From Dendrobates tinctorius (Eukaryota): a DNA stretch of 64,000 bases. Below the pieces are notes generated by a model. The model had not been told where the DNA came from, searched no databases, and saw only the letters and a list, made by a program, of their open reading frames with translations. The number at the start of each line of letters is the position of its first letter. Positions within the stretch are counted from its first letter, which is position 1. The stretch is from NCBI RefSeq assembly GCF_039654945.1, contig NW_027361678.1, positions 14,880,001 through 14,944,000 of the forward strand, read 5' to 3'. A program made the position numbers and the translations under genes. This document shows positions 36,294-42,200 of this stretch, in pieces.

Positions 36294-39200
36294 ATGCTCC
36301 GAGCTTTGGAAGAAGATGTGAGGTGTCGGCTGCGCTCGGCAGTGGCTGTCACATCGGTGGCGCAGTGTGTGGAAGAGCTGGTTCTGAACAGCGTGGATGC
36401 AGGGGCCTCGTGCATCGCCGTGCGTGTGGACCTGGAAACCTTCAAGGTGCAGGTTGTGGACAATGGGTGTGGACTGTGCCGTGAAGACATGGAGCGCGTG
36501 GGCAGGAGGTACTTTACAAGTAAATGTCACTCTGTCGAGGACCTGGAGGAGCTGCGGTTTTATGGTTTTCGGGGAGAAGCTATAGCGAGTATGGTGGACA
36601 CATCCAGCGTGGTGGAAATCTACTCCAAGCACAGAGACTCTCAGCAGACGTTCAGCAGACTCTTCCAGAATGGTAAGCCACTGGAGGTCCTGGAGGTAGA
36701 AAGCACCCGACCCAGCGCTGGGACCACCGTCACCATCTACAACTTGTTCTTCAGTCTGCCTGTCCGCAGAAGGTGTCTGGACCCGGCCATGGAGTTGGAG
36801 CGGATCCGTCACAGGGTGGAGGCCGTCTCTCTGCTGAGGCCGTGTGTCTCCTTCTCCTTGAAAAATGACGCCGTTCATTCTATGCTGCTCCAGTTACCAA
36901 AAACCAAGGACCTATACTCTCGCTTCTGCCAGATCTATGGCTTGTCCAGAAGCCGAGGCCTGAGGGAGGCGCAGCACACACACGGCACATTCACAATGCA
37001 AGGACTCATCAGCCGCGAGGGGCACTACAACAGGACCATGCAGTTCCTATACGTCAACCAGCGGCTGGTCCTGAAAACAAGCCTACATAAACTCATGGAC
37101 TCCATCATCAGGAAGGAGAGCTCTATTTGCAGAGCGAGCAGCCGCCCGCGCTCTGCCACTGATCTCTACGGCATCTTCATAGTTAATATTCAATGTCCGG
37201 CGTCAGGCTATGACATCTGCTTTCAGCCGGACAAGACATTGATCCAGTTCCAGGACTGGGACGCAGTAATGAGCTGCACTGAGCGGGGACTCAAGATTTT
37301 TCTGAAGAGGGAGAATCTGCTCCTAGAGCCATCAAAAGAAGCCATGGCCGCGTCTGGCCAAAACCATAGGTCTAATTCCTCCTGTGGGGAGGGTGAGTGG
37401 TCCAGCCCACCCAATGACCCCTGGAAATCGCACCAATCAGATTCAGCTCATCTGAGATCCAAGTGTGTAAATAGGAGCAGTGATGTGACAGAAGTAGGGG
37501 CCCAGGAGGACCACCAGCTCCCCAGTAAAGTCTCCCAGACACTCATGGTTACACACGAGGGCAGGAAAGTGTGTGATGGTCATGAGGTCGTGGTGAACCA
37601 TGATAGAAGCCCCCTGCCTTCTCTTCATACCTGCACAATACACAAGACAGTGTTCACCACTGCTCTGTCTTGTGCCATGAGTGAGACCACCTCATCTGTA
37701 CCCCAACCCCCCCCTAAACCTAGCTGTACCAGTACTGGATCTGCCTCCACAGCTCTATCCAGGGTCACGAGTGAGAAGACCAACTCATTTGTACCCCAAC
37801 ACCCCACTAACCGTAGATGTAGCAGTACTGGATCTGCCTCCACTGCTCTGTCTTGTGCCACTAGTGTAAAGACCACCTCATTTGTGCCTCAAAATCCCCC
37901 TAACCCAAGGTGTAGCAGTACTGAATCTGCCTCCACTGCTCTGTCCTGTGCTACGAGTGAGAACACTGCTTTATCTGTACCCCCTAACCCTAGATATAGC
38001 AGTACTGTATCTACCTCCATCGCTCTGTCCTTTGTCACGAATGAGAAGACCACCTTATCTGTACCCCAAAATCCCCCTAACAGATGTCCTGGGACTGAAT
38101 ATGCCTCCATCGCTCTGTCCTGTGTCACGGGTGAGAAGACCACCTCATCTGTACCCCAAAACCCCCCTAACCTTAGATGTCCTGGTACTGGATCTGCCTC
38201 TACCACTCTGTCCTGTGTCACCAGTGAGAAGACCACCTCATCTGTACCCCCTAACCCTAGATGTAGCAGTACTGGATCTGCCTCCACTGCTTTGTCCTGT
38301 GTCACGAGTGAGAAGACCACCTCATGTGTACCCCAAAATCCCCATAACCTTAGATGTCTTAGGACTGGATCTGCCTCCACTGCTCTGTCCTGTCCCACGA
38401 GTGAGAAGACCACCTCATGTGTACCCCAAAATTTCCCTAACCTTAGATGTCCTGGGACTGAATCTGCCTCCACCGCTCTGTCCTGTGCCCCAAGTGAGAA
38501 GACCATCTCATTTGTACCCCCTAACCCTAGATGTCCTGGATCTGTCTCCACCGCTCTGTACTGTGCCACGAGTGAGACGACCATGTCATCTGTACCCCCT
38601 AACCCTAGATGTAGCAGTATTGGATCTGCCTCCACCGCTCTGTCCTGTGTCACGAGTGAAAAGACCACCTCATATGTACCCCAAAATCCCCCTAACCTTA
38701 GATGTCCTGGGACTGAATCTGCCTCCACCGCTCTGTCCTGTGCCCCAAGTGAGAAGACCACCTCATCTGTACCCCCTAACCCTAGATGTCCTGGGACTGG
38801 ATCTGTCTCCACCGCTCTGTATTGTGCCAGGAGTGAGACAACCACCTCATCTGTACTCCCTAACCCTACATGTAGCAGTATTGGATCTGCCTCCACCGCT
38901 CTGTCTTGTGCCACGAGTGAGAAGACCACCTCATCTGTACCTCCTAACCCTAGATGTAGCAGAATTGGATCTGCTTCCACTGCTCTGTCCTATGCCCCGA
39001 GTGAGAAGAACACCTCATCTGTACCCCCTAACTCTAGATGTCCTGGGACTGGATCTGTCTCCACCACTCTGAACTGTGCCAGGAGTGAGACGACCAACTC
39101 ATCTATACCCCCTAACCCTAGATGTAGCAGTATTGGATCTTCCTCCACTGCTGTGTCCTGTTCCATGAGTGAGAAGACCACCTCATGTGAACCCCAAAAT

Positions 39201-42200
39201 CCCCCTAACCTTAGATGTCCTGGGACTGAATCTGCCTCCACCGCTCTGTCCTGTGCCCCAAGTGAGAAGACCACCTCATCTGTACCCCCTAACCCTAGAT
39301 GTCCTGGGACTGGATCTGTCTCCACCACTCTGAACGACTCATCTGTACCCCCTAACAATAGATGTAGCAGTATTGGATCTGCCTCCACTGCTCTGTCCTG
39401 TGTCACGAGTGAGAAGACCAACTCATCTGTACCCCACACTGCCACTTACCCCAGATGTCCTGGGACTGAATCTAAGCCTCTACAGAAGGACATTAGTAAA
39501 TTTGCTGTTTCTACACCGATATCTGCTCCATATCCATTGCCAAAGGAAAGACAAAAAGGCCGAGCAACCAAAAGGGCAAAGAATATAAATCAGAGACATG
39601 GTTCAGAACCCACGAATATCCAGCTCAGTGTGACCTCCAGCCTGGGGGGGACCCTAGACAAGTTCAAAAGACGCTATGGAAAGACTTGTCCTGCGGACAA
39701 GGATCACCAGGAACAACAACCCCCCAAAAGCCCTGGGAAGAGTGAAGCCATCAATCTTATTAGTTGTGTTGGCACAGATATCCCCCCCTGTGCAGTACGG
39801 ACCACCCCGCCAGGACCGCTAGACTATGTGGGCATAAAACAAAGAGAATCTCCTCATCCAGAATGTTCCCCAACATTAACCACCAAACTGTGCCGGCTAA
39901 AAAACAAGAGCGAGGCGTGGTGGGGTATGGGTAAACCTGCCCTAAGTGCACCCCACGGCTCGGTCATCTGTGGCAACGGTGCCAATCCGATGTCCTGCGA
40001 ACAGCAATCAGCACAGAGCCATGGGGGGCAATCGGCTGACGATTCCCTAGACGGGCCCAAGTCTCATGAATGGCTGCACTGTTACCAAGAGTCTCTAGGT
40101 AAAAGTGTCTTCATTAACACTGCGACAGGGCTCAGCAGTTATAGCGCCCCCACCATGGACACGCCAGCTGCCTGCACCAAGGACTTCTCCAACATGGCGG
40201 TGAATGTGGTCTGCAGTGGCGGTACGTATATATACCAGTATTGGGTGTAGAGGAACCCAATGAATCGTTGTACTCAGGGTGTGTTGCTGCAGCGTCTCCC
40301 TCCCGTCATCTCTGCTCTCATTTCATTAGGCTTCCAGTATCCGTGTCATCCTTTTAAGAGTCAGGCCCTTTTACCTTTCCTACCCAGACCCCGGCATGAG
40401 AGAGACACAGCAGAACAGACAGGTAGTTATGGCTGACCGCTGCGTCACTCTTATAGACATTATAGTAACGGTGCTGTCTCCTGCAGAAGATGGCGCCCTG
40501 TCCTCGCTCTACACGGAATGGACCAACCCGGTGTATGAGCGCCATCCAGCGGTGAGTAGTAGTGTGGTGGCCACCAATGGCGTCCGTGCTACATTCTGAC
40601 TACACATGTACCCAGCTACACGAAAATCTGCTCCTCCCTGACAGTACACCATACACATATGTGCAGCACACCAGACTCCACACAAGATCGCATACACGTA
40701 TGTACCGTACACCGGACCCCACACAGGACACCGTACACATACAGTATGTTCTGTACACTGGACCCCACACAAGACCGCATACACGTATGTACCGTACACC
40801 GGACCCCACACAGGACACCGTACACATACAGTATGTTCTGTACACTGGACCCCACACAAGACCGCATACACGTATGTACCGTACACCGGACCCCACACAG
40901 GACACCGTACACATACAGTATGTTCTGTACACTGGACCCCACACAAGACCGCATACACGTATGTACCGTACACCGGACCCCACACAGGACACCGTACACA
41001 TACAGTATGTTCTGTACACTGGACCCCACACAAGACCGCATACACGTATGTACCGTACACCAGACTCCACACTATAATGATCTGACTGCTGCTTATCTCT
41101 CTGCATTCTCAGCTTGCAGTGGATGTGAGCCGGGAACATTCGGATGTTTTATCAGTGAAGATCCACAATATTCTGTGTCCGTATCGCTTCACCAAGGAGA
41201 TGGTGCACAGCATGAAGGTAAGAGTGCGGCGCTCTTGTGGAGGATCCAACTGGCCCTAGCTGCAGAGCTGCCACCCCCCTTCACTGCAGAGCCGCCACCT
41301 CCCCCCCCTCGCTGTATAGCCGCCACCTCCCCCCCTCGCTGCTGAGCCGCCACCTTGTTCACTTGCTTCTGAGCCGCCACCTCCCCACTGATTGTTCCAG
41401 TCCTCTTGTTCCAGGTACTGCAGCAGGTGGACAGTAAGTTTATCGCTTGTGTGATGGAGGCCGGGCTCACCACGGCGTCAGGTAAAGGCAGAGTGCCTGC
41501 TGAGATCAGGCGATGCAGTAATGATGGATGGATCAGACTCATATAAGGGTCTGTATGTGCCGGTCAGTGATCTGTTGTGTGCCACGTCTCCTATACAGGT
41601 GGCCAGCTCCTGGTATTAGTGGACCAGCATGCTGCACATGAGCGTGTGCGCCTGGAGCAGCTGATCACAGGTACATGCACGCACACTGGGGACGGTTGCT
41701 GCTGGCGCACACTTTGGTCTCATGTCTGTCACTGCTCTTGTAGACTCTTTTCAGGGCTCCTCTGAATTCTGTGAGCGGCGGCTGAAGGTTTCTGTGGTGG
41801 ATCCAGCTCTAGAGATTCACGTGTCGGAGGAAGAATATCGCATACTTAGGTAATTGCCACGTCTGCCAGTGTCACCTCTGGGTGGCACGTTGCGTCATGA
41901 CTGCTGCTTCTCCTGCAGGACACGACCCGGATCGCTGGGGAGACTAGGCCTGAGTCTTTCATTCCCCGACACCGGGAGCCCTCGGATATTGGTCAGTGAG
42001 ATCCCCTTATGTTTCCTAGAGAGGGAGGCCAATGAGACCCAGAGAGGGAGGAGGCCGGTACTCAGGAGTATCGTGGAGGTGAGCGGACCATGTGTGAGAT
42101 GTGCTCCGCAGGAGAGCGGAGCATGTTTGGTGTGTGCTCTGCAGGAGAGAGGAGTGTTATGAGGTGTGCTCCACAGGAGAGCGAAGCGTTTGTGGCGTGT

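Follow-up and report, generated by a model that had tools for sequence, protein, structure and literature searches.

The linker between the ATPase and endonuclease domains of MLH3 in the dyeing poison frog Dendrobates tinctorius contains an in-frame coding minisatellite of a half unit and 20 full units, which is kept in the spliced mRNA and was born by tandem duplication of a segment native to the linker itself. The array was studied in a 64-kb stretch of genomic DNA (NCBI RefSeq assembly GCF_039654945.1, contig NW_027361678.1, positions 14,880,001 to 14,944,000, forward strand), hereafter the window, whose own numbering is used throughout. We consider it likely that the array is a tolerated, disordered minisatellite spacer, the product of a minisatellite-prone genome, in which the reading frame is kept only for the sake of the endonuclease domain downstream.

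The repeat array and its host gene

The array lies in a plus-strand open reading frame (ORF) of 1321 codons (36285-40250, with an ATG at 36285). Over its whole length, the translation of this exon shows 100% identity to the RefSeq protein "DNA mismatch repair protein Mlh3 isoform X2" of D. tinctorius (XP_073443774.1, 1641 amino acids (aa)), hence a protein bearing the repeat was already modelled in RefSeq. Among the best 120 matches, the named proteins are MLH3 from frogs, turtles, birds and lizards (E down to 0), except for three frog models named "acylphosphatase-1". Pfam identifies HATPase_c_3 (aa 24-121, 1.8e-07) and DNA_mis_repair (aa 216-338, 9.1e-09) in the N-terminus of the exon, and PF08676 (MutL_C) is precomputed for isoform X2. 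The endonuclease metal-binding motif DQHA(x)2E(x)4E is intact and its exons map to the window. The gene with the repeat exon is MLH3, and its product would form a heterodimer with MLH1 and act as a crossover-specific nuclease. What separates the two RefSeq isoforms, X1 and X2, is a block of 61 aa situated beyond residue 1512, in the region of the C-terminal domain; their array is identical.

A preliminary description of this DNA had reported 21 copies of a repeat in one frame of a giant MLH3 exon, with units mostly of 28 or 31 aa and roughly 40 Cys. The copies are a half unit followed by 20 full units, with no stop over 604 codons; 17 of the 20 are 28 or 31 aa long, and the array holds 39 Cys. 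Tandem Repeats Finder (TRF) detects a single array (37657-39395, periods of 93, 84 and 177 base pairs (bp), 76-79% matches). Once split on the array's own motif, the units comprise eight of 31 aa, nine of 28 aa and three of 30, 26 and 21 aa, with a consensus that begins with Cys and ends with P-N-P-R. The description had also put the protein at about 1035 aa without the repeat, which agrees with 1641 minus approximately 600.

All units share one reading phase and the same amino-acid motif, which implies that every indel between units consists of whole codons. At least five independent indel types separate the units (9, 3, 6 and 21 bp, and a second of 3 bp), and such an outcome is expected by chance in about 0.4% of cases. 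The coding frame is free of stops, the other five frames of the array contain 3, 5, 22, 48 and 74, and the two non-coding frames without a stop in the unit consensus have gained 5 and 3. The array thus qualifies as a coding minisatellite, with head-to-tail units within 10-100 bp, in multiples of 3, in one phase and kept in the mRNA.

The array also has a higher-order structure. Identity between units, 0.78 at lags 1 and 2, reaches 0.87 when the lag is 3 and 0.91 when it is 6; unit 12 is the same as unit 18, and each shares 97% identity with unit 9. The three-unit higher-order repeat is therefore real. The pattern of 31-28-28 aa previously proposed for the second half stands as regards its three-unit period, but the lengths follow it only in part.

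Over 599 aa, the array is composed of 37% Ser and Thr (220 residues), 12% Pro and 6.5% Cys, with only 3 His. Its Cys residues are 12, 16 or 19 residues apart, the spacing within a unit being 12. Eight of the 20 units contain an exact 11-nucleotide (nt) telomere-like motif (CCCTAACCCTA, window 37982-39297), for which 0.02 sites per window are expected by chance. This interstitial run inside a coding exon comes from the Pro-Asn-Pro codons and is probably a by-product of them.

Presence of the array in spliced mRNA

Expression was assessed with Logan contigs from D. tinctorius runs (RNA X15 and X17, from two studies; DNA X22) and from a run of a close relative (X7). Contigs of X15 and X17 show GT..AG joints from 40220 to 40329 and from 40419 to 40484, avoid both introns and contain nothing of the upstream intron. 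Because they carry intron joints, avoid introns and have a 5′ loose end that corresponds to an exon 16 kb upstream, X15 and X17 are RNA. Contigs of the DNA run read straight through both introns.

RNA contigs occur inside the array at 37877-38252, 38310-38425, 38476-38615, 38876-39135, 39111-39220 and 39297-40220, with 0-1 differences from the window. The run of the close relative (approximately 2-5% divergent) is also RNA and contains pieces of the array, part of the higher-order block included. No joint skipping the array and no indel was found in the RNA contigs of the three RNA runs from two species, and both RefSeq isoforms include the array. Removal of the repeat by splicing, which the preliminary description had named as a finding that would overturn its reading, is thus not what the contigs display: the array is transcribed and kept in the spliced mRNA, and presumably translated.

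At their 5′ loose end (36260), the RNA contigs carry sequence found nowhere in the window except 19952-19974; TCTGCAG comes next there, and a GTACGT donor follows. The large MLH3 exon is hence spliced to a non-coding exon 16.3 kb upstream, which ends at 19981. The aligner starts at 36260 because TCTGCAG is common to the end of the upstream exon and the end of the intron.

Origin of the array within poison frogs

The repeat is not specific to D. tinctorius. The MLH3 of Ranitomeya imitator contains a half unit and 7 full units and that of Phyllobates terribilis a half unit and 8 full units, in both cases in an open exon, which makes part of the array ancestral within Dendrobatidae. A single copy of the segment is found at the same site, with the same left and right flanks, in Eleutherodactylus, Leptodactylus, Rhinoderma and Engystomops. 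Since these four other hyloids carry one copy between the same flanks, the array was born when a segment native to the linker was duplicated in tandem. An alignment of anuran MLH3, suggested in the preliminary description as a means of dating the expansion, dates the duplication to the interval between the separation of poison frogs from other hyloids and the divergence of Phyllobates, Ranitomeya and Dendrobates.

In a tree of the units, those at the edges are orthologous between species (Dt01-Ri01, 97/86; Dt06-Ri06; Dt20-Ri07 with Pt07/08), and those in the interior form clades of one species only (Dt09/12/18, Dt10/13/16/19, Dt03/14/15 and Pt01/02/03). Most of the higher-order units (8-19) belong to clades restricted to D. 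tinctorius. Orthologous edges with species-specific interiors are what repeated unequal exchange would be expected to produce.

The array had been thought to replace much of the linker. Between the same alignment anchors, however, the linker of D. tinctorius without the array measures approximately 375 aa, compared with 378-421 aa in five other hyloids and 278 aa in Bufo, and is longer in Xenopus (608 aa) and Ascaphus (686 aa). The short linker is hence common to all sampled hyloids, and the array, a duplicated native segment of 28-31 aa, raises the linker from approximately 375 to approximately 955 aa, with about 600 aa added. The hyloid MLH3 proteins of the alignment are short as a whole (936-1103 aa, against 1300-1450 aa in Xenopus, Ascaphus and amniotes), corresponding to a loss of approximately 200-300 aa of linker. 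This loss is older than the poison-frog repeat, and the array is an addition.

No such repeat was found outside the MLH3 of poison frogs; the preliminary description had noted that human MLH3 is not known to have one. A word-indexed protein search with a 604-aa query (candidates of 332-1057 aa) and an exhaustive HMMER search of 1.84 billion representative proteins both returned the MLH3 of Phyllobates as their sole match. An origin from another gene or from a mobile element was rejected, since neither search yielded a relative outside dendrobatid MLH3. A query made of the last units and the post-repeat linker (candidates of 204-649 aa) found no fragment from other dendrobatoids.

Substitution pattern and predicted disorder

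Compared with Ranitomeya and Phyllobates, the ratio of non-synonymous to synonymous substitution rates (dN/dS) of MLH3 is 0.12-0.15 in the N-terminal domain, 0.46-0.66 in the non-repeat linker and 0.46-0.58 in the post-repeat linker; the N-terminal catalytic part is under strong purifying selection and the non-repeat linker is relaxed. The comparison of substitutions between units, also proposed in the preliminary description, reveals 50, 92 and 86 differences at codon positions 1, 2 and 3, without an excess at the third. The corresponding ratio of non-synonymous to synonymous differences (pN/pS), pooled over unit pairs, is 0.81, which is close to neutral. At the two Cys positions, retention among the 35 units of the three species is 85% and 79%, about the average of all positions. 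Cys is replaced by Tyr, Arg, Phe or Ser, and the first Cys is Tyr in 4 of the 8 Phyllobates units.

The repeat has no match in Pfam, even at E up to 10, and none among Protein Data Bank (PDB) sequences. Features of the ESM Atlas gave only matches below threshold, to surface glycoprotein-like and cornifin-like low-complexity proteins. AlphaFold2 (AF2), run on the repeat without an alignment, returned a mean pLDDT (the score predicted for the local distance difference test) of 44, with no residue at 70 or above.

Three functional candidates were rejected. The repeat contains no S/T-P or S/T-Q motif despite its 220 Ser and Thr, which makes a cluster of CDK or ATM/ATR phosphorylation sites unlikely. 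An array of C2H2 zinc fingers is not supported, given the absence of C-x2-4-C...H-x3-5-H, the Cys spacing of 12 residues, the 3 His in 599 aa and the lack of a Pfam match. A metallothionein-like metal-binding repeat was discarded as well, because Cys makes up only 6.5% of the residues, forms no dense clusters and is kept in 79-85% of units, close to the average.

A probable tolerated spacer and its alternatives

In the scenario that we favour, a segment of 28-31 aa of the disordered MLH3 linker was tandemly duplicated in the poison-frog lineage to give an in-frame coding minisatellite. In the lineage of D. tinctorius, interior three-unit blocks would then have been amplified further, by unequal exchange or replication slippage, up to 20 units. 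The resulting array may serve as a flexible tether, rich in Ser, Thr and Pro, between the ATPase and endonuclease domains, and selection would preserve the open frame for the sake of the essential endonuclease domain encoded after it, while hardly constraining the amino-acid sequence. We infer that the array is disordered and that MutL-gamma tolerates the extra length. The genomic surroundings are consistent with this scenario: the window contains 14 distinct minisatellite arrays with periods of 32-120 bp, several of them within MLH3 introns, and the 13 besides the coding one have periods that are mostly not multiples of 3. A neutral by-product of a genome rich in minisatellites is the most likely explanation of the repeat.

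Several observations weigh against this interpretation. The AF2 run was alignment-free, which makes its low confidence weak evidence on disorder, and the charge-hydropathy test is borderline, with the repeat marginally on the "ordered" side. Unit pairs are not independent, yet the pN/pS of 0.81 pools them, and it may be distorted by gene conversion. No contig spans the array, so the count of 20 units comes from the assembly. Furthermore, lengthened disordered regions of the yeast Mlh1-Pms1 complex lead to repair defects (PMC6393296), and the Pms1 linker is unable to replace the Mlh3 linker in yeast (PMC8495741), hence a 2.5-fold longer linker may not be neutral.

An adaptive expansion, in which a longer tether would alter the way MLH1-MLH3 encircles or polymerises on joint molecules and so tune crossover number or a minor role in mismatch repair, is the first alternative, and copy number would then be a modifier of recombination. 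In yeast MutL-alpha, both the length and the composition of the disordered regions matter (PMC6393296), the yeast Mlh3 linker contributes to pathway specificity (PMC8495741), and signs of positive selection were reported in the MLH3 linker of three vertebrate lineages (PMC12642689). The array has also stayed open in three species despite independent rearrangements. An open frame is, however, required anyway to reach the endonuclease domain, substitutions between units are near neutral and no position stands out, Cys included. In addition, copy number does not track genome size, since Phyllobates has a genome of 12.6 Gb (PMC12208295) yet 8 units. An adaptive expansion is thus considered unlikely. 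Still more doubtful is the stronger proposition that the array is polymorphic in copy number in poison-frog populations and that tether length changes the activity of MutL-gamma.

A second alternative is that the array is real and that its assembled length of 20 units is wrong, repeats having been collapsed or expanded. All runs break at the same repeat boundaries, the breakpoints of the RNA contigs within the array being those of the DNA run, and no short-read contig crosses it. On the other hand, 93% of the sampled 31-mers of the array are present in DNA runs and 82-87% in the two RNA studies, and all unit-specific contigs, of RNA and DNA alike, show 0-1 differences. Most units can be told apart (58-93% pairwise identity) except units 9, 12 and 18, which share 97-100%, and an array of 1.8 kb would be far below the length of long reads, assuming a long-read assembly. 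A misassembly of this kind appears very improbable.

In germ cells, the array could be removed as a cryptic intron, or an array-less isoform could dominate, giving a meiotic protein with a short linker. Contigs drop rare variants, and RNA of unstated tissue leaves room for such an isoform; as described above, no joint lies within or across the array in any of the three RNA runs of two species, and neither RefSeq isoform lacks it. The chance that meiotic MLH3 is made without the array hence seems slight.

A folded Cys-rich domain, metal-binding or disulfide-linked, is barely credible: the regular spacings of its 39 Cys, a 28-aa unit equal in length to a C2H2 zinc finger and the short strands drawn by AF2 in each unit are outweighed by the scarcity of His, the modest Cys content, the ordinary retention and varied replacements of Cys, and the lack of a Pfam or PDB match or of any confidently folded residue. 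MLH3 is moreover a nuclear protein, in which stable disulfides are not expected. The earlier suggestion that the Cys might bind metal is not borne out by these data.

Other features of the window

Features of MLH3 are collected in Table 1. The boundaries of the downstream exons are accurate to a few bases, and the first two junctions were confirmed by RNA contigs.

Table 1. Coordinates of MLH3 and of its repeat array in the window.
Feature	Position	Strand	Evidence or remark
Non-coding upstream MLH3 exon, 3′ end	19952..19981	+	Spliced to 36267; loose end of RNA contigs, then GTACGT donor
Large first coding exon of MLH3	36267..40222	+	Acceptor AG 36265-36266, donor GT 40223; ORF, protein identity, RNA contigs
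MutL N-terminal domain: GHKL ATPase (aa 24-121) and transducer (aa 216-338)	36354..37298	+	Pfam
Leading half unit (aa 458-480)	37656..37724	+	Left part of the ancestral single-copy segment; aligns to Eleutherodactylus, Leptodactylus, Rhinoderma and Engystomops
Twenty full repeat units (aa 481-1054), 84/93 bp = 28/31 aa	37725..39446	+	TRF, unit tables, alignments
Higher-order part (units 8-19): three-unit block in four copies	38355..39362	+	Lag identity; unit tree
Post-repeat linker	39447..40222	+	Its first part is the right flank of the ancestral segment; frog alignment
Eleven downstream MLH3 coding exons: C-terminal endonuclease and MLH1-interaction domain	40329..52614	+	Exact-match mapping of the RefSeq protein
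Downstream exons 1-4, approximate	40329-40421, 40486-40551, 41113-41220, 41415-41483	+	Exact-match mapping
Downstream exons 5-8, approximate	41598-41669, 41743-41850, 41917-42078, 43003-43026	+	Exact-match mapping
Downstream exons 9-11, approximate	52062-52142, 52323-52484, 52552-52614	+	Exact-match mapping

Examples of the other minisatellites of the window are located at 1-939, 5284-6092, 20178-20974, 35413-36065, 40644-41072, 42077-42742, 54187-55366 and 59572-62324. One intronic minisatellite begins right at the donor of the MLH3 exon that ends at 42078.

RefSeq gives the label "acylphosphatase-1 isoform X1" to the MLH3 of Ranitomeya imitator, Phyllobates terribilis and Engystomops. In Phyllobates, an acylphosphatase gene is located 2.4 kb upstream of MLH3 on the same strand, and shared 5′ exons or read-through models are the probable cause of the mislabelling. 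The Phyllobates MLH3 model is itself split into a 1000-aa piece that runs into an intron and a separate 330-aa MutL_C piece. For annotators, it follows that these MLH3 models, including the two mislabelled as "acylphosphatase-1" in Ranitomeya and Phyllobates, hold real and not spurious repeat sequence.

Significance and comparison with known systems

Poison frogs and their relatives provide a natural series of MLH3 arm lengths, from approximately 400 aa in other hyloids to approximately 600 aa in Ranitomeya and Phyllobates and approximately 955 aa in D. tinctorius, with strongly conserved catalytic domains. The series bears on the question of the role of the long disordered arms of MutL nucleases. 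If meiosis in these frogs is normal, the tether of MutL-gamma would tolerate very large changes in length; if crossover numbers differ, tether length would be a tuning parameter, and either outcome bears on models of MLH1-MLH3. Were the array both polymorphic and active, it would constitute a natural and rapidly mutating modifier of crossover number, and the series of 1, 7, 8 and 20 units would serve as an allelic series for how a disordered arm sets the reach of a MutL nuclease on joint molecules.

No description of this repeat was found in the literature, and MLH3 does not come up in the D. tinctorius genome paper. The array is an instance of known phenomena, namely the variability of the MLH3 linker and coding minisatellites in disordered regions, and the repeat itself is undescribed in the literature found. 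Rapid evolution and interspecific differences in length have been reported for the MLH3 linker (PMC12642689). The frog array concerns the same protein and the same region, encoded in one very long exon. It differs from this general variation in being the result of one type of event, the in-frame tandem amplification of a single native segment of 28-31 aa, which adds approximately 200 aa in Ranitomeya and Phyllobates and approximately 600 aa in D. tinctorius.

PRDM9, likewise a meiotic gene, has a zinc-finger array whose in-frame 84-bp (28-aa) units each contain two Cys and which is reshaped by unequal exchange. The frog array shares the 84-bp in-frame unit, the two Cys per unit and the meiotic host gene; unlike in PRDM9, its units have no C2H2 signature, no position looks selected and the array lies in a spacer instead of a DNA-reading domain. 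Similarly, the array resembles the coding variable number tandem repeats (VNTRs) of mucins, rich in Pro, Thr and Ser, in its Ser/Thr/Pro-rich composition, its units of tens of residues, its higher-order structure and its predicted disorder. Unlike mucin VNTRs, it is hosted by a nuclear enzyme of DNA repair and meiosis, with no signal peptide or secretory context, and its repeat derives from the protein's own linker and from no mucin gene. The number of full units differs between species (7 in Ranitomeya, 8 in Phyllobates and 20 in D. tinctorius).

An experimental counterpart is yeast Mlh1-Pms1, whose disordered regions, when lengthened, shortened or scrambled, give rise to defects (PMC6393296). 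Like these engineered regions, the frog array alters the length of the tether between the ATPase and endonuclease domains. The yeast constructs are laboratory variants of MutL-alpha that are mildly to severely defective (PMC6393296), whereas the frog array is a natural variant of MutL-gamma.

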